Source: Paraphysomonas bandaiensis
Lineage: Eukaryota; Protista; Chrysophyceae
Reading direction: 5' to 3'
Assembly (NCBI GenBank): GCA_965644295.1
Contig: CBFFRP010000100.1
Span: 1 to 44,129, forward strand
Length of the DNA stretch: 44,129 nucleotides
A model generated the notes under the pieces. The model searched no databases and had not been told where the DNA came from. It saw only the letters and a program-made list of their open reading frames with translations. Below are positions 3,072 to 44,129 of the stretch, piece after piece. Every line of letters begins with the position of its first letter. Position 1 is the stretch's first letter. The position numbers and the translations under genes are program-made.

Positions 3072-3986
3072 AGAATTTATAGTCATTTGGTAACTATTTG
3101 CTAAGCTGCATGTACTAACTCTAACACTGCAATCACTGTAATTTCTCTATTAACACGTTAATTACACATATTTGTGATGACAACTTTCGATGCACGTGAA
3201 ATACTCTTAGTGATGATGGGCTGAGCGTAGACTAATATTGAAGAATTCGTGACATATATTAATCGATGTAACAATATATGGAACTAGGGGTCGAAGTACA
3301 GAAATATTTAGTTCTAAATTAGCAACTATTATATCCACCGACACACACTTTATCTCCTGTAACCAGTAACTACTAAAGCCGCTTGCAATTGATCCCGATA
3401 ACTTTAGATACAGTATAACGTATATCTCTTTCGTAAAGGAGTTGCCTGGCATTTGTAACAGCAACAACATTATAGTCGTCTTGGGCTATAGTTGTGCAAC
3501 ATAGTCACATCAAAAATAAGGGGTAGAGAAATTAGTAGTTAAATAATTTATATTTTCAGCAGTTTACTGTGACTGAATGAACTAGGATGACTAAATGTTT
3601 ATGATTGATGGCATTCACTTAGCCATAATAAACAATTAAATATTTTAGATACGAAAATTAGTGTGAAAAGGTTGTATAATGTTCTGAAAGTTATCAGAAC
3701 GAAAGTATAGTTTGTAAGTGTGCATCGCAAATGATCAAGACAACTCTTTCATTTCGACCACTACCTAGAGCTGTTAAGTATTTGTTGAATGAGGTTGCAC
3801 TGCTGATTGCTACACACATTATCATAACACCTAACTTGTGTATAGGAAAAGACAGACAGGGTAACAAGTAACTAGTCATCATACGAACAATGAACAACAG
3901 TATGTTTGCTCTTCGTGGAATAGTATTAATATTTACTATGAACATAAATAATAATGAAGCTATGTTGTAGTAGTCATTCATAAGTT

Positions 3987-4679
3987 CTACGTATTTCTAA
4001 TATCTCCGTCAGTGTTTCTCGCTACACCCAATAACTTTTTCATGGCGAGATCCATATTGCGAGATCCTATGCGTTTCATCGCCGCAATATTTCGTTCCCA
4101 TATTTCTTCAGTATCTCCATCATAATCATCAACAGCTTTAGCAACCTCTGTTACTTTCAAAAGGTGGATAGTAGGAAACGGTGATCTACTTATCCAATTT
4201 TCGGGACTATTCGGTTTCGTGTTTTCGTATTTAAAATCAGGGTGGAACGTTGCTACCTGAATTTTGAAATCCATTCCCGTGTTCTCTAGAATTTCTGTGA
4301 AAGTTGATGAAAATCTAACAAAATTCTCAAAATCAGTGAGTTGAGGAACAACGACTAGTGTGGAACCAACTTCTTTGTCAGGTACTAAGTCAAGTGCATG
4401 CTGTAGTAATTCTTCGTGGGCTGGTTTATGCAATCTCTCATCTGAAGGGTCTTGTAGATCAGCACGACATACGTATATTCTCAAGTGATTCAAGTCTCGA
4501 GCAGCCCATGGACAAAGACCGAACTTGACAACGATAGATCTAACCCATATATACGTGGCGTTTATCATAGTCGACTCATTGTCCACTGCATTGCAAAAGG
4601 ATCGATATATGGGCATTGTTTTGACTACTCTTCGTAGAGAAGGTCGAATGGGTGTAAAGAGGTTCATCACAGGCTTCAT
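3987..4679 (-). CDS. DUF1415-family protein with a putative mitochondrial presequence
   Basis: Motifs WVRSIVVKFGLCPWA, QVATFHPDF and SRSPFPTIHLL, plus IWERN. The N-terminus from Met 4679 is Arg-rich and lacks acidic residues. Confidence 0.85.
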   Translation of the reverse strand: MKPVMNLFTPIRPSLRRVVKTMPIYRSFCNAVDNESTMINATYIWVRSIVVKFGLCPWAARDLNHLRIYVCRADLQDPSDERLHKPAHEELLQHALDLVPDKEVGSTLVVVPQLTDFENFVRFSSTFTEILENTGMDFKIQVATFHPDFKYENTKPNSPENWISRSPFPTIHLLKVTEVAKAVDDYDGDTEEIWERNIAAMKRIGSRNMDLAMKKLLGVARNTDGDIRNT

Positions 4680-5141
4680 ATTATGAATAGATTGACTTAC
4701 GATCACTGACTCTAATGAACTGTGTGTGTGTATAGAATATATGGACTGTTCTAACACATACATACACTGCCTGTAGCTATACATACATACACTGTCTGTA
4801 CGAATACATCATAAACTGGCCTGGTATACGCGGTATACGGATAATACATGGCTGGCGTCTCATTACACTGTTGAAGCAGGGCAGAGGTATCATATCGAAT
4901 CATATTAATTTGAAACATTATCATTGGATATTAAGTAGAGAACTGAGATATAGTGTATGTATGGGTCTGACGCATGACTGTGTGGTACATACATATACAG
5001 CAGTGCAAGTCTATCATATATGTATATATGTATGTATATATGTGTGGTAGTATCCGCATGGAACAAATGGGGACGTGGGAGTTGTGGACAGAGGATCATG
5101 CCCTGATACATCGTGCGATACCTTGATCTCATATCTGCTGG

Positions 5142-5247
5142 TGTTCTCATTACGCATAGAAGCGTCTCAACTAATAGAGTGTGTTAGCCGTTACTGTTCA
5201 GCTAGCACACTCTATAAGTTGAGACGCTTCTACGCGTAATGAGAACA
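5142..5247. ncRNA. Long inverted repeat: candidate pre-miRNA/hairpin RNA or tiny foldback element
   Basis: Arms 5142-5190 and 5199-5247 are 49 bp with 4 mismatches; the loop is the 8 nt TTACTGTT. The hairpin is seen directly; RNA function is inferred. Confidence 0.45.
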
Positions 5248-5958
5248 TTACCATCAATGTAGATCAGGTCCCTTGTGTTGTAATAGAGTCTAGAGAAGGA
5301 CACAATACACCGATGACCAGTGCAATGCCATTTACTAAATCTATTCCACTCTATATACATATATATGGGAAAGTAAATCATAAGCCCTTTAGATTCATTC
5401 TTGTGATAACTATCAGCTTCGATCTAGTTGAGTATGTAATTAATAGTTCTAGTTGTAACATACACTGCGTCTCAAAAGTGAAATGACACTTGTAATAGTT
5501 TGATATTTGATATTATATTACTAATACCTATCTAGCAGGGCTAGGAAGCAATATATTGCAATATTTCTGGTTTACCACTAATAACCAGATATACATTTTA
5601 CCTTTCTTTCTGATTCTTTGTGTGTCGATATTCTATATGCCTACAATACTTGCAAACTACGTAGTAAATAAGTTAAGCCTTGTAAATTACTGTGACGCAG
5701 TAATATTTAGTTAATGGGAAAAGAGGAGCTGTATATTCCTATTAGTCACTATTCTCTCCATATAGCAATATATATGGAATATGGACAAAGAAGTCCAGTC
5801 AACATATTATTTATTAAGAAATGTTTGCCTCGTAGAATTCTTGCCTTGATTCTTTTGAAAGCAAAATACTGCATTATTAATTGTTTTGGGAACTACTCCT
5901 ATGATAGTAACAGCACTGAAAACACTACAAACAAATGTATGATAGGTCACTACTCTGT

Positions 5959-8900
5959 TTACTCCGATGGGCTAAGAATACTCTTCACCAGTTTTGCCTT
6001 TTCCTCCTTACAGGACGCAGTATTTTCATCATCAACTCCGGCCCATTTACCTGAAACTACTTCTTCCAATTCATCTTCAGCCAGAGTTCTCAACATTCGG
6101 CCAACAAAAAGTCTCACATCTGGAGCAATTTTTAAGATCCCTTTAAGCTGTGGAAAAGGAAGGCCCAATACTGCTTTTAAAGTAGGCTCTGAATCTCTAT
6201 GTCCAGACATCGTTTTTATGCACATGACAACACCATCCCACACTTTGAGTTTGGGATCAACTTTCCAAACCTTCGAGCGAATCAGTTTAGGAATAACTGT
6301 GATTAATGCAAACTTCTTAATTTCAGGAATATTTTGCGACGAAAGAATCACAGTTCGCATTAGAGCCTTTGGCGGAACTTGGTCGTTCAACAAAGTTGTC
6401 ACAGCTTCCCTAATAACATCCGCCTTGAACTCGTCCTTAGCACTTAAACAAAGGCCAATTGCCTCCAAGAGATCTTTAAGTTTCATGTCGTGTGATTCAT
6501 TGTCTATCCTGTAATCGTATTAGAGGATAAAATAATATATGCAGTGTAGAAACCGTACCGATGTAGTGATACGAGAAGGTTCGCCCGCGACAAGGGTGGA
6601 GGCCTCGCACGGGTAATGCGGGAAAAGCTTTTGCGGAGATAATCGAGCTTCGTATTACTACCCTCTCCCTTGACATCGTCCTTGAGTTCCAGGATCAGTC
6701 GAGGCAATATGGCCTCCACGGCCGCAGTACTCATTCCACCCAACATTGGAATCATTAGTCTAATATCTCGACAGGAGTCTGGGAGTGATTCAAAATATTT
6801 GCTAACCAAACCCACCAAATGCTCCGACGGAGGAATTTGAGTATCACTAAGAACACTATCTAATACCAAAACGAGCATTGGCAGAGCCTGGATATCACAC
6901 TGGAGCAAAGTTTCGAACCAATTGTCGGCGTCTCGAGATGAAGGGGACACCGCAGGTATGATATTCAATACCTCAGTTTGTAGAACTCCACGAACAACTT
7001 TTCCATAGTTTTCAGGTAGTGACTCAACAAAGCTACCAAATGCGCTGCCGCTAATGGAATCTATCTCCGTGCCCAGACAGTATCCCTCTAGCATCTTGCA
7101 CGTGCCATAGAGATCTAAAAACGCTACCAGTAAATGGGGTCTTGTCAGCGTGAGCTGAGCAAGTAAATGCAAGTGGCGCTTCGAGAAGGTGGTAACTTTA
7201 TCAGATTCAATAGTATTTATCGCTGTAAACTTCCGTCCAAACAGAATCCCACCATCAAAACATCCAGCTGCAACAGTTATATCCAAACTATTATTATAAT
7301 CAATGTCACAAAGGAAGTGAAACACGTCCCAAGACGAAGCGAAAGGCTCGTTGTGACAATGGAGGGCGCATTCTCTCTCTGCCATTCGGCGGCGATAGCC
7401 CTCGATACCCACTGCATTCACAGCCAGTTGCAATGCAAAAAGTATTATAGTCGTTCTAACGTGAGACAGACCTTGTCCAGGCTCGTGGTCACGGTCTATT
7501 TTATTAGCCACCCTGAAAAATCATCAGATTAAATTGCTTCAGCCAACATTAGGTAACCTACCCCACTAGAGCGTTTACCGCTGCGTTCCTCGTCGCAAAA
7601 TCATCAGACTCGCAAAGCCACAGCAGAGGAAACAGACAGGCGCGAAATGATTCGGCATCCATCATGCAACTCTCGTGCAGCAGGAGGCTAGTCATGAGCT
7701 CCATCGCAGCTGTCCTGACTCCCCTATCAATTCCGCCATGACTCCTCCGTCGTCCTGGTTGCGCCTGAGATGAAGCCGTCTGTCTGGTGCCCGTGACAAG
7801 AAGCAACTCAAGAAGGTGCAAACAGACGAGAGGAATACGGGGGAGTGATCGAAGGACACGACCTGCATAGGGTCGCAAAGCCCGGCGCTGTAGTATGCGC
7901 GAGGTTACGACCAAACACATTGCATCGTATAACCCAACTGGAAAATCTTCTCCTTCATCTTCATCTATAACAAATTTTCCGTCCGCTTTCCCCTCACTAA
8001 CCTCCATGGGTTCATCTGCTGTTTTTACATTTACGCTATTGGGAGTGGGAGAGCCGGGGAGACCTAATAGCTGGCCCTCTGCATGTGCCGCCCTACATGC
8101 GAACACCTCACGCACCAATGTGAGCACAAGGTCGAGGCGGTCAAACCGCTTCCCTGCTTGGCACTCTAAGTTACTTTCCTGGGTATTCTTATCTACCCCA
8201 GATGCACCCTCTTGAGCCTGCAATGAATGGCTCAGATACAACCATACAGACCTGATGTCATTACTCATTATCTTATAGCGTGGGACAAATATAATATACC
8301 TGGGCAGCATAACCTCCAAGGGTACTCTGTTTATAGGAGGTACTTCACCACGTACTCCTCCAACAAGTCGGTGAGAAGTTACCCGCGGTTTTAATGTCAC
8401 TGAGACTGTTGCAATATACCCCACAGCAGATGCGGGGGACGTTTTTTGGTGCTCCAAATCTGCTTGAGACATCGCCAGAACTGTGCGCAAGAGCAGCTGT
8501 AGATGTAGAACAGACTAACAAGATATAATAAGATACACAAAATGTGATACAAAGATAAAACACACACCTTAAGAACAGGTGGACTACAAGGTAAGAGAGT
8601 AGTCTGCAGAATCTTGCTAAGACTACCCAGTGCAAGATCTCCATATACATCGCAGGACGGGCCAAGTGACTGGAAGCCCGCTGATAGTTTAGAACCAGGC
8701 TGTGGATCCATCCCCGCTTTAAGAGACACCAGTCGCATAGAAGTAGTTGCTTCTGAAACGAATGCTCCAAGATCTCCAGCCAGTACAGTACACCCCTCTT
8801 CAAACATACCAGAGGAAGAATTTCTGGAGAGAGCAGGCGCCGTTACAGTCTTGTCTTGTGCGCTCCCTATACCAGCTCCTCCTTCCAGTATGTCTTCAAG

Positions 8901-33688: not shown

Positions 33689-33982
33689 TATTAGAATATG
33701 GATCTTATTCTAGTATATTCAGTATGTCACTTCAAGACAATGTACGAGAATACAGTGAAATATAGTGATGTACAAATGCTGTGATGATATTGAGAAACTG
33801 AAATAGTTTGATCGTTCAAGATATGTTCAGTAACGAGAGGTTCGCATATGTAGGATATTATGCAGGGATTATAATGAGTTAGTGTTGGTTATCACAACTT
33901 CGTGTAAACGATATTAATAAATCTATCTAGTCTTACGACAAATTCTCTCTGTGATCTAGTGTAAAATGAGCGTTTCTCAACA
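33689..33982 (+). repeat. 5' LTR, 294 bp, TATT...AACA
   Basis: Matches 43840-44129 with no mismatch seen and is followed directly by TGGTAGC. Confidence 0.95.
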
Positions 33983-36200
33983 TGGTAGCGAGCGAGGAGG
34001 AGAGAAGGAGGATAGAGGAGTAGTGCCACAGTTTAATGAGAGCAATGTTGAACAATGGATTGAAGACTTCGAAACGTTCCTCATGAGGAAAGAGCAAAGT
34101 GAAGTAGCTGTGGAGCCACCACCGAAGGAGAGCGACTTCGGGGAACAGCCACTCACGTTAATGGAGGAGAAGTCTTACAGACAGGCTGTGAAGAAGTACT
34201 GGAAGGCGAATGCCATAGCGTATTCGTACTGCAGAGAGGCAGTGCAATCATCTTCGAAGGCGCTTCAGAAATTCCATCTTCTACATAAAGGGTTCAAGGC
34301 TGATGGAAGTGGAAGCAACAGGTTTAAGGCGCATATTATGATTGATGAGTTGAAGAAGTGCTTTGCTGGAGGAAAGCAAAACAAGATCAGTGAGCTGTTG
34401 ACTCAGTATGGCTCTTTCCGTATGCGTCCGGAGGAGACTGCGAAGGACTATATAATACGGTTTGAAATACTGCTGAAAGAGCTACAGGAGCAGCAGCAGG
34501 ACATATCGGAGCTCTCAAAAATAACACGGTTACGAGAAGGTCTGTTGAATGAAGAATATGCTCCTCTGAATGTTGCTTTGTATTTGATGCCTGATGATGT
34601 TGATTATGCAACATTATCAAGGAAGATAGAACGGTATGATGATACCATTCCTGGAAGGATTGCGTTAGAGCGGAAACGCAAGAAGGTGGAGGAGCTGAAC
34701 TTCATTGAAAAGAGCAAACGGTCTCGAACGGAACGGGATAAGCGTAAGAAGGGCAACTGTAGATATTGCAGGAAAGAAGGAATTCCTCATAGCCATTCAA
34801 CTGAACAGTGCAGGAGGAAGCAGAGGAAGAAGGATGGAGAGATATCAGGGCAGCGTCCTGGAAGTGCTGAATACACGGGATGCAGAAATTGCAAGTCTCT
34901 GGAACATCTTGCTGCTGATTGTCCAACGACGAAGAAAAAGCATTCTAGAAGAGGAGAGAAAGGGAAGAATCATGGTAGGAAGCCGGACAAAAGGCTGCTG
35001 ACAGTAGAGAATATACGGCGTGGAGAACCAGCAGATTTCTCTGATGAAGATGAAGCTAATATGATCGAGGATGTTATGAAATTGTCATGCAATATACATG
35101 AAACGAATATATGTAGTGTAAATGATGACATGCATTATACATATATTGACACCTGCTGTTCATCATCAATGTTCTTGATGAATGATGTGACCATGCTTGA
35201 CACTCATATGAATACATCAAAGGTGATAAACGGATCTAAGAAGGGATCAGAGATTCATATCACAAGTGTGGGTTCCCGTGGAGCATGGAGAGACATAGAA
35301 ATTTCAGATCAGATCAATCGATGCCTGTGCTCCGGACGTAAGCTGAACGAAATGGGCTATCGATTCACGGTGTGGTATGGGATCCAAATTTATGACTGTA
35401 ATACCGGTGAGCTGGTACTGGAGGGACCCATGAAGAATGGAATGACTGCAGTTCCAACTCAGCAGCTGTTGGAGCTTCCAGATGTGTCTACACCGAGTAA
35501 TTGTGAAGTAAATCTTAGCGATAGGACTGGTGAGGACGAGCTGGAGTTGCTGCATCGGAGAGCGGGTCACTTCAACAAACATGCTTTAGTAGAGGCACAT
35601 AAGAGGATGCTCATCATGGGTACAGGGTTGAAACGGAAACACCTCACAGCCAAGGTACACAAAAATCAGTGTTTGTGTGATGTGTGTGCCAGGTCTAAGA
35701 TAACCCGAGTCAGCTTCCGAACGAAGGACGAGAATTCCGTTAGACCGAATTTTTCAGCAGATATCGCTGTGTACTTAAATTGTCCTGCTAGAGGAGGTGA
35801 GAGGTATGTGTTAAAGATAACGCATCATGCCAGCAAAATGTTCTGGGCGACGGGTTTAGTCCACAGAACTGGGGAAGCGGTCTTAGAAGTCTTCAAAGAG
35901 CTATTTAGAGGAGATGTTAGAAGGTACAAGCTCAAGATGGAGCACTATCATGCAGATGGTGCAAGAGAGTTAATCAGTGAAGAGCTGCGTCAGTATCTTA
36001 GGACACAAGAGTGCTATCAACATACGTGGAGCTCAACAGACTCTCCAGAAATGAATGCCATAGAGGAGAGGAAGTTCAGAACTGCTGGAGAGATGACTCT
36101 TGCAATGCTAATCCAATCTGGACTGCCACCGCAATTTTGGCTGGATGCATACATGGCAGCCAGATATATTTTGATTCGATTGCCAACGAAAACAGATAAA
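33966..36200 (+). CDS. Copia polyprotein part 1: Gag with Zn knuckles, protease, integrase
   Basis: CRNCKSLEHLAADC, YIDTCCS, LHRRAGH...CDVC, ADIA, ADGARE and EERKFR. Cut at RLPTKTDK by element A. Confidence 0.93.
33983..33993 (+). promoter_or_regulatory. Primer-binding site (TGGTAGCGAGC), tRNA-iMet-like
   Basis: TGG follows the LTR-terminal CA immediately. It resembles TGGTA(G/T)CAGAGC; the tRNA identity is inferred. Confidence 0.7.
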
Positions 36201-36505
36201 AAGTTGATGTGATGAACAAACCTGGAGAAGCGCTCTAAACCTGGTGAAATTTTGAAAATGTCGATTTAAGTTGTGTTTTTTATATGTTTTGCAATAAGTA
36301 ATGTAGTAGGTGTAAAGAGAACATGTTTTTGGAGACATTTAATAAGTTTTATATTAGTTACAGGTCCAAAAAGTGAGAATGTAACGGTTAATGTAACGGT
36401 TAATACATGCATACTATAGATAGCACTATTATATATATTACAAAGTGCTATCTATACTTACAAGCGATAATCAACTGAACTTCTGGTACGTTTACCAGTA
36501 ATAAT

Positions 36506-38245
36506 TAGACTAAACCATAGTCTGTAACCATAGTCTGTAACCAATGATATAAAGTGGAATTATTACAACACTGAGCAAAGCAATCACGGTACCCCTCTAT
36601 TCTATAGTTTCCTTAGATAGAGTATCAGCATGTGTGTACAGTTCGCTAGCTAACGCGTTACAGAAACTATAATAATCAATACTATTTGTATCTATCGAAC
36701 GAATATTACAATACGCATGGAATGTATTTTGCAGAACACAGCCGAACGCAAACGAGCTAAACTTTCCTCTTTCGCCTAGATGCCCTCCACCACCATGCCG
36801 ATGAGGCCATATCCTCTCTTTAATCTGTAAATTGAATACATCACATGCTGCAAACATCTTACCATAGTCGGAGCACACAGGCACAGAATTGGTGGTAGAC
36901 CTCGTAGGTGATCTATGATAAGCATTGGACAAGGCGGTATATTTCTTGCCATCCTTCGTATAAGAATGAACTATGAGTTCTTTACGCTGTTGATTCCACA
37001 GTCCATTCCACTGTCCTCGTATATTGACACCTTCACGAACTTTACGAGTGAGTGCTTGGAAGCGCTGTGGATTCACAGCCCCGATATATTTTACTTTCTT
37101 CCTTGCAAGTCCCTCTCGTGCAGCTTCATCAAGATAATACGAGTCGAATACAAGAACAGTGCTACTCATTCGTGTAGAATTAAAAGAGTGTATGATTTTG
37201 CCCCAGTGTTCCACTACAGCGCTGACAGGTATAGACTCTCCTAGATCAGCTATTGCATCATGCAACCACATGTCCAGCATATATGCGTGTTTATTGGAGA
37301 GCTTCACACACAACTCATACACCCACAAGCCCATTCGTTCAGGCTTCATATAAACTACTCTTATATTAGGACTATAGCCTATAAATCACTTGTTAATAAT
37401 AGTATTCAATTGATCAATATACACACCTGAGAAATGCAGCAACTTCTCATCGCCAGCTACAACATTGCCAATACCACGTAAAATAGATCTAAAATTATGA
37501 GACAACTGCTTTGAATATCGACTATCAAATAAAAAGTTCGTTGTCACAATTTCCATGAATCGTATGCCCAGAGAATCAATCCTTGGATAACAATCCTTAA
37601 AGTGGTCTCGGTACCATATAAGTTGCTCACGCAATGGTCGCGAATGACGTATTACACCTCTTGGGGCATGTTGTTCTCCATAAATTCGAATCCAAATTGC
37701 AAGAAGCTTATATATAGAACACAATGAAAGCAAAATTACCGATCCACAGTCATATGTCAAGTCGGCAGGGTCAATATCCTGGGCTATTTTCGTCACAAGG
37801 GATACTGTAACAAAACGCAAGAATATCTTGAGGAAGCTGGCAGTGCGAAAATTAAACGTAGGGTATCGATCTGCATCAACCGTATGAGGCAGATGGAATG
37901 ACTCATTGGCCGAATCAACTGGTCTCCAACGCCCAATGATCTCTATTTCCTGAGCACGCTCTGAGCTTCTTGTCGCGTCATCTTCATCGTTGCAAAGAGA
38001 ACCTGATTTGCGCTTTCGAAATGCCATGTCAAACTATGAGTGAATGGGGGATACAATGAACTTACCAGCACATTAATTTGACCTGCAATTCGCTGACTCA
38101 ACACTGTGATATGAAGTGTGAAGTGTGGTTCACATTGTCTGATTTCGACTGATTTTATGACAGTTATTTTATGTATGAAAATCGACGTTATTTTCAGTTT
38201 TTTTTCAATTTTTTTCAGTATGGTTGCAGACTATGGTTTAATCTA
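36506..38245 (-). mobile_element. TIR DNA transposon B (1740 bp), TAG...CTA, 3-bp TSD AAT, nested in A
   Basis: 27-bp TIR TAGA(C/T)TAAACCATAGTCTG(T/C)AACCATA. AAT at 36503-36505 and 38246-38248. Excision restores the A cargo ORF. Confidence 0.9.
36597..38027 (-). CDS. piggyBac-like (PGBD/DDE_Tnp_1_7-type) DDD transposase, 460 aa, one intron
   Basis: Exons 38027-37427 and 37378-36597 with a 48-nt GT-AG intron. Motifs VAGDEKLLHFSG...MKPERMGLW, VLVFDSYY, YIGAVN and YGKMFAACDVFN. No C-terminal Cys-rich domain. Confidence 0.85.
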
Positions 38246-39114
38246 AATAGAAGCAGAATCAACTGCACCTGTGTCTACCCACTCCTTAGTGGGTTCCTGG
38301 ATATATCTCCACCTCGGAATATTGTCTCTTTTACTGGAGGGAATATTATGAGGCTTATCCTGGTGGGCTATATTCAATATTAGGTACAGTACACAAACAA
38401 GCATATATATAAAGTATACCAGATGCAAGCGAGAAGTATTTGGAGCGCACTGACTTATCCTCCCTGGTGGCACCACATCTCTTCTTGCTTTTGTAAACAA
38501 GATGATAGGTACCATCATCATTGACAGCATGGACAATACCACGCATCCTAGTCACAGTAACAATTTCGTCCCCAGGAGAATACGTGATAGAGGGGTTACC
38601 ATCGTCATCAGACGATGATGACTCCACCTCTTGTCCTGATATTGTACAGATATAAACATGGCATAATAATATAATATCTACAACACAATAACATACCAGA
38701 TTGATTACTATCGTCTGAGTCATTGACGATTATATCACCACAATCCCAGCCTTCCTCCCTCCTCCTGGCATCAAGCCTCGCCTTCTTTGCACGTGCTTCT
38801 TTTCTTTCAACATTTGTCTTCTTCCTCGCCGCACGCTGCTCTTCTCTGCCGGGGTACACATTGGGCAAGACTCCGACCATATCGGTGGGTGTAGAACCAT
38901 CACAATTCCGGACGACAACTCGTGGGGGTATCTTCCTTGCGCCGTAGTTGCTGAAGCAACTGATGTGGTTGCTAATGCTGCTACAGCAGACGGAAACGGT
39001 GACGTGGCCGCCGTAGATTACCTATCTACATTCGTTGCACTCTTCAAATCTTCGTCAGAGTCACTCTCTGTTACGTTAGCAGGGTGTGAGCAATGTTTTG
39101 TTCACAAACCATTT

Positions 39115-40313
39115 ATGAGTGATCCTAATAACACCCCGCTGAAATTATTCATTGACCTCGAGGTCCATGATAAGTGTGGGCTATTATATCACTATATATT
39201 GCTGTCTGCTCATTATAACAGGAGGTTGGATAACCTGTCAATAAGTCGTGCAATCGTCGAAGACCGTAGAGGCCAGAGATTTTACGTCGGCTGCTTACTC
39301 CGGACCAAGTGCGTTGCCCCAAGGTATGATGCCATGCTTCTACCGTTAGCAGATGGCACAATGGAACAGTGGTTCCGCGTACAGGGGATCTCGAAGTTTA
39401 AGAAGGAATACAGATATCTTCCTCTGGAGTTTGAGGACCATGATAGACTGATATCTTCCTTAGGTAATTGGTTTGAAATCCATGACTTTACCTATGTCCC
39501 GGAGAGAGGACCAAACAAGGATGAAACGGGGTCATTTGTTGTTGTTGAGACGGATGGCTGGGACCAGGAACCCTCTGAAGGAAAGCGAAAGGGGGCTGGC
39601 CGGAGAACCAAGAAAGTTCATTCGGACAACAGTATAGTGGTGCCAAAAGTGTGTGGGCGGCGCAAGAAGGCCTGCGCCATGAAGAAGGCGCAGGAACTGG
39701 TCGAGAAGATCTCTTCTAAGAAACCGAAGCGGAGTAAAGTCGTAAGAAATGTCTGCTTTTATGCTTTGGATATTTTATTTAACTTTTGACTTTTATTGTG
39801 CAGGGGAAGTACCATGATGACGAAGTAATCACGATTGAGGATAGAAGTATTTCTCATGCATCCCCTCCCACCCACCAGGATGGGGGTATTCCTCATCCAC
39901 CCCCTCCCCTTCACCAGGATGCTGTCGTCAAAGAGTTGATGCAACAACTGAAAGAGTCCCAGGCTATGTGTATGGAGTTGAGAGACGAGATGAAGCAGAT
40001 CGTATCAAGCAGAGAAGTGGCTCCCTCACCTGTACAGCACGATCCCTCTGCTCAGCCTGCATCTATTGTTGGTGTTTCCGAACCGCCTGTACCTCCTACT
40101 ATCCCTGTGGCACGTACTGCTTCTCTTGGTGCTTGTGATGATACTGGTGTGTCTCTTGCACCTCAACAAGCTGTTCATTGTAGTGATGGTCGAAATTCTT
40201 TTATGCTTATGTCTACAGTGCAAGATCAAACTGATCGACTGCATCGATTACATGATGCGGAAAAGAAGAATATTTTGTACGAGAACTTAGTGTTGCAGAA
40301 TTACTTCAAATAA
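39115..40313 (+). CDS. Element A cargo gene 2 (~378 aa), unknown function
   Basis: Exons 39115-39741 and 39804-40313 joined by a 62-nt GTAAG...TGCAG intron. Globular N-terminal half, K/R-rich NLS-like tract, Pro-rich linkers and coiled-coil-like segments. Confidence 0.7.
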
Positions 40314-40650
40314 AATATCGTTTTCGGTGAAGCGTAATTAATTCAGGGATATTGTGTCTGCATTTTATTACTTCGTGTATGTGTTGTCTGTGCATAATAT
40401 ATATATAGTAGTGTTACGTTGATGTGAGATTTTCATAAGTAGTAATACAGTAGATTTATATGAGAAGTAACAATATAATACAGTATTTTAGTAAAATATT
40501 TTTAAAATAATATATATAATTGATAATATACAACAACTAAGTTATAACTAATATTAATACAGACTTCAAATAAGCACTTATATGAAACTTTTCCATATAT
40601 GAAACCTGGTGAAATCACTTTACCAGGTTTCATGATCACACCGACTTAAA

Positions 40651-41530
40651 GGGTATATGTCTCCTATAGAGTTTCTAACGGGTGAGCCTCCAAATTTGAG
40701 ATATCTTAGGGTATGGGGGTGTCGAACTTATGTTCTTTCACCGAAGGCGGATCGACGAAAGGATTGGGAGGATAAGGCTCTAGTTGGATATTTAATGGGT
40801 TACTCTGATGAGAAGGTAGGATACCATGTATATCTTCCTGAATCAAACAAGGTGGTGACTACAGTCCATATATTGACTGATGAGTCAACGCCATCACGAT
40901 CAGAGAAGTATTTCGCAGAGATTGATGCTCTTCGAGTGCGGGAGGCCGCTAGACCCAAGCTTGCATCCGACTATGTCAGCTTAGAAGGAACGTATCATAT
41001 TGATGATGAGGACGGACTTCTGTATAAGACAACAAGAGTTGTAGAACGTAAGGGTGTGATTGTAGCATACCGTTCACTTGTTACTGCAGGTCGCGAGCAT
41101 ATAGAGCACCGGGTGCCTATACACGTCGAAGACGTGGTGCGTATGACTGCAGAAACCCCCGGGAATACCGGGTACATAGGAAAGGGGGACGCCCTGAGTA
41201 CTACGCCAGCCAGGGAGCTGGACCAGGGAAGACCTGGAGGGTTCCAGGAGAGTCCTGACCCGACCTGTCAACAGACAGTCGTGAGGTTGCAGACCTTGAC
41301 AGACCGTGGGTCTGGGGATGCGAGCGGGGCTCCTCCCACACCGCAAGATTTGCGGGCTCAGGATGAGCAAGGTATGGGTTCGTATATATCTACTAGACGA
41401 CCTATTGAACTAGATGGTGATGGTCGTGTACGGCGGAAACGGCTACAGCGTAGGTTGGCGAACGCATCGGTGTTAGGAGAAATAAATATGGTTGAGGTGC
41501 CAGATGCATGCACTGTTAACTTTAAACATG
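40651..41530 (+). CDS. Copia polyprotein part 2: integrase C-terminal/SH3-like region
   Basis: GYMSPIEFLTGEPPNLRYLRVWGC...GYLMGYS...GYHVY. Confidence 0.92.
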
Positions 41531-42014
41531 AAGCAACCTTAAGACAAACGTGGGAAAAATTTTTTCCCACGTTTTGGACCCTTTGTACCTCATCCTATAC
41601 TTATGGTTTTCATTAAACTAGTGTTATTATAACAGTGTAATAATATTATATAGTGGCTACGAAACTATTTTAAGTGCTTGAATTTTGTAACAAATGAATA
41701 GGAGATTTCAATAGAATTATTGGTATAGTAGTAAATTATAGTTATAAGCACCTTACAATAATAACTATTCTTGTGTCTGTAAGAATCGTAGACGGCGTAT
41801 TTCTTGGGCCTGTCTACTGTTAGTTGCAATTAATTCCGAATCACGTTCATACATATATTTTATTAAAATATCATATTATTATTATGAAAACTTCTTGCAA
41901 ACTACTCGAATAACACTTCGGGACAAATCAACATTAAAAATACTCGTAGAATATAGCTTTCAATCAAAAGTCCCAAATTTCAACATTTGTCCCACGTTTG
42001 TCTTAAGGTTGCTT
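41531..42014. mobile_element. MITE C (484 bp), AAG...CTT, 3-bp TSD ATG
   Basis: 30-bp TIR AAGCAACCTTAAGACAAACGTGGGA(A/C)AAAT. ATG at 41528-41530 and 42015-42017. AT-rich non-coding interior. Excision gives FKH-AEFQHDDFKIP in frame. Confidence 0.95.
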
Positions 42015-42017
42015 ATG

Positions 42018-43660
42018 CAGAGTTTCAACATGATGACTTTAAGATACCAGACTCCTATGCTGAAGCGGAGAGATCTCCACAGTACATGAAGTGGCGAGAA
42101 GCTCGGAAGGTGGAGAAGACCTCACTACTGAAGAGACGTGTCTTAAAGATTGTGCGGACTCCACGGGGAGTGAAGTTGGTGCGAGCAAAGTATGTTCACA
42201 CGGTGAAGAGAGACCTTCTGGGGAATGTAGTCAAGTATAAGGCGCGGCTGGTTGCATTAGGGAATCTACAGGAAAAAACGGAGGAGGAGCAGTCCACGTT
42301 TGCTCCAGTGGTCAAAGGAATAACCATTCGACTGGTCCTCGCGATTGCGTTTATGTTCCATATGCATGTACATCAGTTGGATGTATCATCAGCGTTTTGT
42401 TATGCCGATCTTGAAGAGGATGTGTATATGGCACCTCCACCTGATGAAGAGTTGCCAGCGGGGTGGTGTTTTCAATTGATCAAGGCCTTATATGGTTTGC
42501 GGTCATCACCGAGGCAGTGGAACAAGCATATTGACAAGTTTATCAAATCGTTACATTTTACTGCTTGCATTTTAGATACATGCTTGTATATGCGATGGAG
42601 TAATGGTCAATTGCACTTATTGCTGATATATGTTGATGATATTATCATTGCATCTGCTGATCTCACCTACTTAGAAAGTGTTAAACGTAGGTTCTGCGAA
42701 ACGTTTGAAATGCACGATCTGGGTGTGTGCAAACGGTTTCTGAATATCAGAATCACGAGAGGAGAGGACTGGTACATGTTAGATCAATCGGAATATGCCA
42801 AGAATATTGTAAAGAAATTCGATTCGTTTATGGGGAAGAGCAGTAAGAATAAGGAGACTCCACTACCTACCAATGTTCAGGATTTGTTGGCAGAGCAACG
42901 TGAGCTGACGGAGGAGCAGAAGCAGTGGGTCGAATCATTTCCGTATAGAGGAATTATTGGAGCGGTGTTGCATTTGGCGATTCACACTAGACCTGATCTG
43001 GCTTACGCTGTGGGGTTATTGGCTCGATTTAGTACTTCTCCAACATATGCGACTTGCAGATTAGCTATTCATTTGTTGAAATATTTACGTGGTACAGTTG
43101 ATAAGGGAATCAGATTCAGTGGGAGTGAGTTTGATTTACATGTATTCAGTGATTCAGACTGGGCTGGTGATAGGATGACTAGGCGGTCCACAACGGGATA
43201 CATCGTGCTTTTATGTGCGGGCGCTTTGGCCTGGCAGTCCAAGCTTCAGACCACAGTTGCGACTTCGAGCATGGAATCTGAGTATATGGCGGAGTATGCG
43301 GCTTTGCAAGAACTGGTGTGGCTTCGGGGGGTGTTCAAGGAGCTCGGACTCTTGGTAGCGAAGCCGACTCCATTCTTTATGGATAGTAAGAGTGCAAAGG
43401 ATCTTTCAGAGAATCCAGTGTATCATAAGAGGTCGAAGCATATTGACATCAAGTATCACTGGATAAGAGAACATGTTAATGGCAAATTTCCTACAGCAAA
43501 ATTGATTCATGTATCTACGGATGATATGGCGGCCGATATTTTTACAAAGGCGTTGTCCACGAAGATCTTCAGCCGTCATGAGAAAACGATTACCGGGGTT
43601 AAGAGGAGTGTGTCTAACAGTGTGGAGGAGCAGCAGAAGAAACGACCCCGAAGAGGTTAA
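42018..43660 (+). CDS. Copia polyprotein part 3: reverse transcriptase and RNase H
   Basis: YKARLVA, QLDVSSAF, KALYGL, YVDD, SDSDWAG, KHIDIKYH and ADIFTK. Confidence 0.97.
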
Positions 43661-43830
43661 AGGTGTGTTTTAGTGGGTGAAAATCCCACATAACTGTATA
43701 TCTAGTTGACTGCTAGATATATATGTATCTTTAAAAGATTTCACATCTGTTTTTACCTATGGGACTAGATAGTCATAGCATTATCAGATTATTGTGATCA
43801 CTGTTGTTTTATCTCACTGCATTCTACATT

Positions 43831-43839
43831 GAGTGGGAG
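43831..43839 (+). promoter_or_regulatory. Polypurine tract GAGTGGGAG
   Basis: Lies immediately 5' of the 3' LTR. Confidence 0.8.
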
Positions 43840-44129
43840 TATTAGAATATGGATCTTATTCTAGTATATTCAGTATGTCACTTCAAGACAATGTACGAGA
43901 ATACAGTGAAATATAGTGATGTACAAATGCTGTGATGATATTGAGAAACTGAAATAGTTTGATCGTTCAAGATATGTTCAGTAACGAGAGGTTCGCATAT
44001 GTAGGATATTATGCAGGGATTATAATGAGTTAGTGTTGGTTATCACAACTTCGTGTAAACGATATTAATAAATCTATCTAGTCTTACGACAAATTCTCTC
44101 TGTGATCTAGTGTAAAATGAGCGTTTCTC
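43840..44129 (+). repeat. 3' LTR (290 of 294 bp, cut by the window end)
   Basis: Identical by eye to 33689-33978. Confidence 0.95.

Follow-up and report, generated by a model that had tools for sequence, protein, structure and literature searches.

The subject of this analysis is a minus-strand stretch, 36458-38950, in a contig of 44,129 nucleotides (nt) from the chrysophyte Paraphysomonas bandaiensis (CBFFRP010000100.1); the whole contig is called the window. The stretch lies in a transposable element, here termed element A (36201-40647), and was taken in a preliminary description for a separate cargo gene of that transposon, encoding a chromatin protein. We regard it as very nearly certain that it is the broken end of the element's own DDE transposase gene. 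The supposed cargo protein corresponds to the C-terminal ~209 codons of the transposase, as seen in two full-length copies (L031 and L032), in spliced RNA and in two relatives with a single open reading frame (ORF; L042 and L043). That the sequence is encoded by a transposable element was rightly recognized, since it lies in the transposase gene of the A family. Element A itself is a non-autonomous internal-deletion derivative of a DDE transposon with target-site duplications (TSDs) of 3 bp. The intact protein consists, in order, of a Cys-rich/DNA-binding region, a DDE core, a linker rich in K, R and E with an acidic part, a Tudor-like barrel, a linker of ~35 amino acids (aa) and a conserved C-terminal tail. 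Tentatively, we infer that through its barrel and tail the enzyme is tethered to nucleosomes, with a bias in where it integrates. The explanation as a whole, which couples the anatomy of a transposase end with a nucleosome-tethering function, is the best available and seems probable.

The truncated gene and its intact parent

The window is eukaryotic DNA with a G+C content of about 40% and short GT...AG introns, and reads of the organism are present in marine poly(A) metatranscriptomes. Genome-wide searches, which cover a 62.6-Mb assembly, find more than 40 matches to window positions 38246-38950. Most copies of the A family share with the window just the part from 36201 to 38944 and then diverge into different sequence; the remainder of the window's element (38945-40652) is found 3.7-5 kb further off in contigs C132, C93 and C346. 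Precisely at the junction of 38944 and 38945, copy L031 on contig C132 carries 5,028 bp that the window lacks, and the intact transposon is ~7-8 kb long. In L031 (5335-7521) and in L032 on contig C93 (4438-6585), the frame of the window's first exon forms the end of an ORF of 715-728 aa that matches the Pfam family DUF7869 (3e-29), and in full copies this frame runs ~690 codons further upstream of the junction 38944|38945. The intact transposase has ~900 aa and four exons, the upstream exon being seen in RNA, and of this gene the window keeps the last ~209 codons. In two relatives from the same genome, L042 (284-2953, 890 aa) and L043 (272-2986, 905 aa), a single unspliced ORF spans DUF7869, the Tudor box and the tail. 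Other deletion derivatives, for example on contigs C164 and C106, have different junctions and keep frames of differing length. Abortive gap repair of cut-and-paste elements leaves varied junctions of this kind, and the 5,028-bp loss in A most likely arose by that route. This one deletion truncates both frames of the element, that of the transposase and that of a second gene. Given the deletion and the insertion of a further transposon, element B, the reading frame in the window is a dead remnant and not a gene.

The remains of the transposase gene are read on the minus strand, away from the breakpoint. The remnant of the large transposase exon (38697-38944) consists of ~82 codons of basic linker, ...VRNCDGSTPTDMVGVLPNVYPGREEQRAARKK...DSNQS, ends at the breakpoint 38944|38945 and is followed by intron 1 (38636-38696; 61 nt, GTATGT...CAG, phase 1). 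Exon 2 (38420-38635) encodes an acidic/serine tract and then the five-stranded Tudor-like barrel (YSPGDEIVTVTRMRGIVHAVNDDGTYHLVY...); it reads ...YSPGDEIVTVTRMRGIVHAVNDDGTYHLVYKSKKRCGATREDKSV..., with basic (RAARKKTNVERKEARAKKARLDARRREE) and acidic/serine tracts preceding. After intron 2 (38368-38419; 52 nt, GTATAC...TAG, phase 1) comes exon 3, which element B has cut in two. The proximal piece (38246-38367) encodes (A)HQDKPHNIPSSKRDNIPRWRYIQEPTKEWVDTGAVDSASI, and the same piece is present in L032. The distal piece (36458-36502), severed from the rest of the exon, holds the last 14 codons, ITGKRTRSSVDYRL, and the TAA stop (36458-36460), and provides the basic half of the tail. Downstream of the TAA, the 3' untranslated region (UTR) of the gene and the element terminus (36201-36457) are conserved to 36201 in all copies, and the sharp end at this position is common to the whole A family.

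Element B (36506-38245, minus strand) is a transposon of 1,740 bp inside exon 3, flanked by TSDs of AAT (36503-36505 and 38246-38248). Its terminal inverted repeats (TIRs) are 31 nt long and 90% complementary, and its ends are TAG...CTA. On the minus strand, the frame ...GAVDSASI (WVDTGAVDSASI) runs into a TAG that is the reverse complement of B's CTA at 38243-38245. Six other copies (L002-L006 and L009) retain the precise empty site, ...CCAGTAATAATAGAAGC..., in which AAT stands once, so the frame before the insertion read ...VDSASIITGKRTRSSVDYRL followed by the stop at 36458-36460. Exon 3 is uninterrupted in these six copies and in L032 (6828-6992).

The intact parent gene is transcribed and spliced. 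Poly(A) metatranscriptome contigs of runs X4 and X5 align to L032, a full-length copy that is 99.5% identical, as three blocks (6031-6495, 6557-6772 and 6825-6969), and the joints between them, 6495|6557 and 6772|6825, correspond to the same 61-nt and 52-nt introns as in the window. In the RNA contigs, exons 2 and 3 follow directly on 465 nt of the transposase exon. The first joint is present in contigs of X1, X2, X4 and X5, the second in those of X1, X4 and X5, and a third intron (L032 4326|4397) is seen in contigs of X1 and X2. No intron-less junction of exons 1 and 2 occurs in the DNA of the genome assembly, so the spliced form comes from RNA.

Much of the preliminary description is borne out at the level of gene layout. 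Both introns that it proposed are removed in the poly(A) RNA contigs aligned to L032. The apparent stop that it ascribed to element B is indeed the terminal TAG of B, as the minus-strand reading and the ends of B confirm, and excision of B extends the ORF just as had been reconstructed, since the six uninterrupted copies read through to the same end. The basic and acidic tracts said to precede the barrel are found in the sequence. The span of 36458-38950 does hold the sequence described, and only a frame start near 38950 has to be abandoned, since 38944|38945 is a deletion breakpoint.

Transposase core, barrel and tail

The core of the transposase was modelled over 371 residues with 36 homologues, giving a predicted local distance difference test (pLDDT) value of 87.8 and a predicted template modelling (pTM) score of 0.87. 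Its elements follow the order β-β-β-α-β-α-β-α, as in RNase H-like enzymes, and its top 17 VIA matches in the full library (Z 8.3-9.7) are retroviral integrase cores, Mos1/Metnase, TnsB and IstA; Foldseek returned nothing below E 1e-3 for the core model. The D, D and E/D columns are invariant in the 36 sequences, with the motifs DGMQQNH, QIDGGSEN and GHTHEDID. Near its N-terminus (L032:4107-4326 and homologues), the transposase contains a conserved Cys cluster, SSCCCIMCMMTCACDGC..., and downstream of it lie weak matches to RFX-type winged helices (E 0.13 here and 2.5e-4 in protein P0034); to judge from sequence, the cluster and the winged-helix region are probably end-binding domains.

The A family probably belongs to the Zator superfamily. 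Like Zator, A has TIRs, 3-bp TSDs, a cut-and-paste mode of transposition and a DDE transposase with an RNase H fold, and its TSDs are known from three copies: AAA in the window, ATT on contig C132 and CAA on contig C369. Zator and ISAzo13 elements both have TSDs of 3 bp, and Zator has been linked to ISAzo13 (PMC10045372); in one Atlas cluster of DUF7869 proteins, 11% of the members carry PF07592 (DDE_Tnp_ISAZ013). Zator has also been placed in the IS630-Tc1-mariner group (PMC7386202), which agrees with the presence of Mos1/Metnase among the best structural matches. The label nevertheless draws on TSD length and the Atlas cluster, and a direct match to ISAzo13 models is absent from both Pfam and NCBIfam, distant members included, Pfam giving DUF7869 alone. 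A also differs from Zator in carrying a second gene. Literature searches turned up no Zator transposase that ends in a Tudor barrel and a basic tail; the one on Zator together with Tudor returned a single transposon paper, on pogo transposons. A search for papers on DUF7869 returned none.

The AlphaFold model of exon 2, built with 18-19 homologous segments, is a five-stranded barrel (strands 23-26, 31-37, 43-47, 57-62 and 67-69) with a pLDDT of 85. Its structural matches are of medium strength and to several kinds of barrel, the sequence profile being more specific: VIA Z scores are 7.4 for PWWP, 6.7 for the TDRD3 Tudor, 6.5 for a trypanosome Tudor, 6.3 for the PHF19 and LBR Tudors and 6.0 for SMN. 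Searched against PDB sequences, profile A2 finds the second Tudor domain of PHF20 (3P8D, 3QII and 2LDM) at E=6e-5 to 1.3e-4, and the longer profile A4 finds PHF20 at E=0.004 and the KDM4C Tudor at 0.12. The likeness to PHF20 Tudor-2 (3P8D, 3QII) is seen in its KVTAVNKDGTYTVKFYDG, to be compared with the (I/V)xxxNxDGTYxVxYxDG of the transposase barrels. Exon 2 is thus Tudor-like by fold and by profile, as had been noticed from the sequence before any search. Several points weigh against taking it for a typical Tudor reader. KOW, PWWP and NdhS barrels match it structurally as well as Tudors do, Foldseek found nothing below E 1e-3 for the barrel model, and exon 2 alone matched no Pfam family. The transposase barrels are without the 4-residue stretch that holds the Trp in 'lacwSDC' of PHF20 Tudor-2; opposite 'acwS' there is a 4-residue gap, and the cage Trp between β1 and β2 is missing (as placed by the HMMER alignment, not by coordinates). 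Of the cage the barrel keeps only the β3 aromatic residue and the Asp of Y-x-DG. The missing Trp makes methyl-lysine reading by the barrel doubtful, and a methyl-lysine cage is not supported.

The tail comprises ~30 aa with the pattern W-x-D-x-G-x-(V/I)-x-x-(S/A)-(N/H)-(V/I)-(V/I)-x-G-K-R-x-R-x3-6-(Y/F). It closes 22 of the homologues retrieved, in which core identity falls to as little as ~38%; these proteins are 770-970 aa long and come mostly from marine metatranscriptomes. By six-frame search, at least 105 loci in the genome match the tail profile, and the few inspected (A copies, L042 and L043) are transposase frames; in the window itself, the proximal piece of exon 3 aligns with just positions 2-36 of tail profile A1, owing to the insertion of B. 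The segments that encode the tail are under purifying selection. Between two intact subfamilies, the ratio of nonsynonymous to synonymous substitution (dN/dS) is 0.18 in the linker, 0.23 in exon 2 and 0.15 in exon 3, or 0.20 overall, at a dS of about 0.35 and with differences of 0.14-0.22 in introns and UTR. A dN/dS of ~0.2, the comparison among copies that the preliminary description had proposed as a check, indicates selection rather than neutral decay. Old copies (L023-L026) have stops and indels in the tail exons. Distant DUF7869 relatives (P0077, P0087, P0091, P0110 and P0116) end in SAP/HeH-like helix-extended-helix segments, P0077 being annotated with PF02037 and P0116 matching HeH at E 0.01, and with such endings the C-terminus looks like a swappable slot for a DNA or chromatin tether.

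Nucleosome tethering and its alternatives

In the mechanism proposed here, the barrel and tail would together form a chromatin-tethering module. The extended tail would lie on the H2A-H2B surface of the nucleosome, held by the invariant arginine of G-K-R and by N-(V/I)-(V/I), in a placement analogous to that of CHZ motifs and of the ubiquitin-dependent recruitment (UDR) motif of 53BP1. The Tudor barrel would bind less strongly, making a further contact with either a histone tail or nucleic acid. Between them, barrel and tail would keep the transposase or transpososome on chromatin and thereby influence where it integrates, and the tail may double as a nuclear-import signal. Other enzymes of mobile elements are fused to chromatin readers or tethers, among them the chromodomain integrases of chromoviruses and the Ty5 integrase with its Sir4 targeting domain. 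The logic is common to all, a C-terminal tether on a DDE enzyme that biases integration; the present case differs in that the tether would be a Tudor barrel with a basic tail and the enzyme a DNA transposase.

CHZ (PF09649) is the only Pfam family that the tails match repeatedly (5 of 24 at E<1, best E 0.055). The tail of the window's element scores 12.0-12.3 bits (E 0.12-0.14), with DSASIITGKRTRSSVDY aligned to positions 8-25 of the 34 in the profile. What the two share is an N/S-I-I-x-G-(K/R)-R-x-R core, then an aromatic residue, with acidic tracts before. The CHZ motif is placed on H2B αC and reaches H2A α2, and full-affinity binding of H2A-H2B by HIRIP3 needs an extended region of ~124 residues around the motif (PMC10854748). 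In contrast to HIRIP3 and Chz1, the transposase tail is without extended flanking regions, and it stands at the extreme C-terminus of an enzyme instead of in a disordered chaperone. Chz1 and HIRIP3 differ in their preference for H2A.Z (PMC10854748), and specificity for H2A.Z therefore does not follow from the motif by itself. A six-frame search of the genome found no convincing host gene with a CHZ domain; its best match (G000:C143:125234-125290, 22.6 bits) was rejected, as it is antisense to an ORF and contains stops (IINIIMSGGRRRGRQ and then a stop).

Searched against the PDB, the tail profile finds as its best match the UDR peptide of 53BP1, ISLDNLVEGKRKRRS (5KGF_L; E=0.18, 15 bits), which occupies the H2B/H4 cleft and the acidic patch (PMC9464978). 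In 53BP1 too (5KGF), a Tudor barrel is followed by a short extended motif, and the tail, as V-d-s-s-N-v-v-t-G-K-R-k-R, keeps counterparts of I1617, N1621, L1622 and R1627 (numbering inferred from the 1484-1631 construct). It differs from 53BP1 in having a single barrel where that protein has a tandem, a longer linker and no cage Trp, and common descent is not implied. Co-folded with the genome's own H2A (L036:151-570, minus strand) and H2B (L036:867-1217, plus strand), the tail reaches an interface score (ipSAE) of 0.40 (0.38-0.41 between runs), and the best of three controls reaches 0.00. Exon 3 was also compared with the PDB by phmmer, which gave designed TIM barrels only and was dismissed as noise.

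A number of results stand against tethering. None of the 24 tails reaches the CHZ gathering cut-off of 23.3 bits, and tail profile A1 does not retrieve Chz1 (2JSS) from all PDB sequences at E<=10. The match to 53BP1, which is short, does not reach significance and is lost when the combined profile of barrel and tail is searched against the PDB. The residue of 53BP1 for ubiquitin-dependent recruitment, L1619 (bioRxiv 10.1101/2020.06.01.127951), has no conserved counterpart in the tail, which keeps four of the five UDR positions. The second PDB match of the tail profile is a basic stretch of NFAT, VINGKRKRSQPQ, and G-K-R-x-R fits a classical monopartite nuclear-import signal. Some homologues carry the tail without the barrel. 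The co-fold is rated 'weak support', with a partner pLDDT of 46-48 and runs that share at least 36% of their contacts. Of 78 solved complexes, 51 reach the mark used for co-folds, as do 2 of 108 mismatched pairs; at scores of 0.60 or less lie just 5 of the 78 solved complexes and all 4 mismatches that passed.

These results bear on two other readings of the tail. In the main rival to tethering, it would be nothing but a nuclear-import signal, consisting of K-R-x-R and its flanks, in which case the barrel would make generic contacts with protein or nucleic acid and there would be no tethering. A nuclear enzyme of ~900 aa needs such a signal, G-K-R-(K/Q/T)-R fits the classical K-(K/R)-x-(K/R), the second-best PDB match is to NFAT, and the resemblances to the CHZ and UDR motifs all fall below significance, beside a weak co-fold. 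We nevertheless find this reading somewhat unlikely: import does not need the ~20 conserved residues upstream (a near-invariant W, D-x-G, (S/A)-N-(V/I)-(V/I) and an invariant G), and the long K/R-rich linkers could already serve it. A fixed position at the extreme C-terminus and a terminal aromatic residue are atypical of import signals, and with H2A-H2B unrelated control peptides score 0.00 where the tail scores 0.40. Far less probable is that the tail is a true CHZ domain, through which the transposase acts as, or hijacks, a chaperone of H2A(.Z)-H2B. The family is the top Pfam match of this copy and of 5 of the 24 tails, an acidic tract lies upstream, and the co-fold with H2A-H2B would fit; yet every score is under 23.3 bits, Chz1 is not retrieved from the PDB, and a chaperone role is without obvious use for a transposase.

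The gene structure bears in turn on the two readings that deny the module its place in the transposase. An independent cargo gene of element A, encoding a chromatin reader of ~190 aa, is suggested by an in-frame ATG at 38880, by a compact three-exon look in divergent orientation to the second ORF, and by a similar ORF of 183 aa in another nested deletion derivative (L031 3981-4532). It is highly improbable, however, when the frame is unbroken upstream into the transposase in every full-length copy, when spliced RNA runs from the transposase exon into exons 2 and 3, and when L042 and L043 are single ORFs; the apparent start, moreover, coincides with the breakpoint 38944|38945, and different derivatives keep different lengths of the frame. 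Hardest of all to credit is a host gene fragment captured passively and in neutral decay. The old copies with their stops and indels are what such decay looks like, but dN/dS is about 0.2 between intact subfamilies, the module ends DUF7869 transposases from many other samples, and of the loci that match the tail profile (at least 105) the few inspected lie in transposase frames.

Of the role originally suggested, a chromatin reader or chaperone used for target selection, the tethering part remains a reasonable reading and the chaperone part does not. The CHZ-like motif stands as a resemblance, CHZ being the most frequent Pfam match; at 12 bits against 23.3, it does not stand as membership of the family. 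Structure prediction with H2A-H2B, a check that the preliminary description had called for, was made here for the tail and is rated as weak support, at low partner confidence. Nothing points to histone-chaperone activity or H2A.Z specificity, and the anti-silencing role that had been suggested as an alternative is not supported. Tethering may also be framed more narrowly, as a two-point nucleosome reader analogous to 53BP1 and independent of it, in which the tail would sit on the H2A-H2B surface or the acidic patch, the barrel would read a histone tail, and a protist Zator-like clade would pick its sites by chromatin state. In that form, in which related clades would have swapped the module for SAP/HeH DNA tethers, we consider the proposal unlikely.

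Nested elements and wider meaning

The remnant lies in a nest of three mobile elements. The outermost is a Copia-type long terminal repeat (LTR) retrotransposon (33689-44129, plus strand), whose LTRs of 290 nt each (33689-33978 and 43840-44129) are mutually 100% identical. Its gag-integrase ORF (33966-36212) is broken off at ...PTKTDKK, and the frame picks up again at 40657 with MSPIEFLTGE.... Element A lies between the two integrase halves on the minus strand, with imperfect TIRs of 25 nt (36201-36225 and 40623-40647; 20 of 25 positions match) and the TSD AAA (36198-36200 and 40648-40650), and element B lies within A. The Copia LTRs are identical, yet A sits inside this element and B inside A, so all three families moved very recently.

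Beyond the breakpoint, A retains a 5'-truncated remnant of its second gene (38945-40313, plus strand), divergent from the transposase gene and comprising ORFs 38965-39789 and 39786-40313. In L031, the first exon of this gene encodes 415 aa and starts MSCDSDSS..., of which the window retains the part from ...VANAATADGNG... on. The complete gene (L031:787-2558, minus strand) has an N-terminal CxxC...CxxC and DATDV-type repeats in the 415-aa exon, and its other exon, of 175 aa, has a direct repeat rich in proline and an end that resembles a coiled coil. It matches no Pfam family; from these sequence features, it may encode an accessory DNA-binding protein.

Full-length copies differ in two further respects. 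Between the second gene and the transposase gene lie tandem repeats of 249 bp (L032:3130-4186 and L031:3041-3776), with 3-4 units on contig C93 and fewer on C132, although the two elements are otherwise 99.5% identical. L031 also contains an insertion of 1.55 kb (3777-5327, contig C132) that is absent from L032. Within it, the 183-aa ORF (3981-4532, minus strand) contains a Tudor-like box of its own and finishes with WVDTGAVGAAPVLIGKRNRKRIENYSY and a stop, and a second ORF (4609-5109) is divergent from it. The layout is one of two divergent stumps like that of the window's element A, from a different subfamily near protein P0071.

The B family is young, with at least seven full copies of 1.74 kb that are 97-100% identical (L038, L040 and L041 among them), and there are many forms of ~1.36 kb that are without positions ~640-1011. 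TSDs of B copies are AAT, AAT, AAT and ATT, and B is also inserted in the A copy on contig C93 (C93:109-1850), at a position other than that in the window. The two ORFs of B match no Pfam family, a weak DDE_Tnp_1 match having E 0.09, and a relationship of B to the DDE core of A was rejected, as hhalign with both B ORFs gave a probability below 4%.

Those A copies that could be placed lie inside mobile elements: the Copia integrase in the window, an RVT_1-like frame on contig C369 (E 5e-4) and a hAT dimerisation-like frame on contig C346 (E 6e-4). The flank positions are 36198/40650 in the window, L014:3527-4288 and L013:3568-4299. One A-family flank enters CCCTAA repeats, and loose ends occur at L032 7249 in runs X1 and X4. 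Copies in mobile elements and near CCCTAA repeats fit chromatin-biased insertion and, equally, a bias in survival.

In this genome, deletion derivatives of these elements repeatedly yield small, spliced-looking 'chromatin genes' that are transposase stumps, as in the window's element A and in the 183-aa ORF of L031; being transposase remnants, such stumps should not be annotated as host or cargo genes. The intact enzymes form a widespread family that is actively transcribed and found in marine protists. The choice of targets in chromatin is understood for only a few DNA transposases, and a Tudor-fold barrel joined to a peptide that resembles two binders of the nucleosome surface is a compact candidate for nucleosome-guided integration. 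If it is true that the tail binds H2A-H2B, it may be a portable tether.

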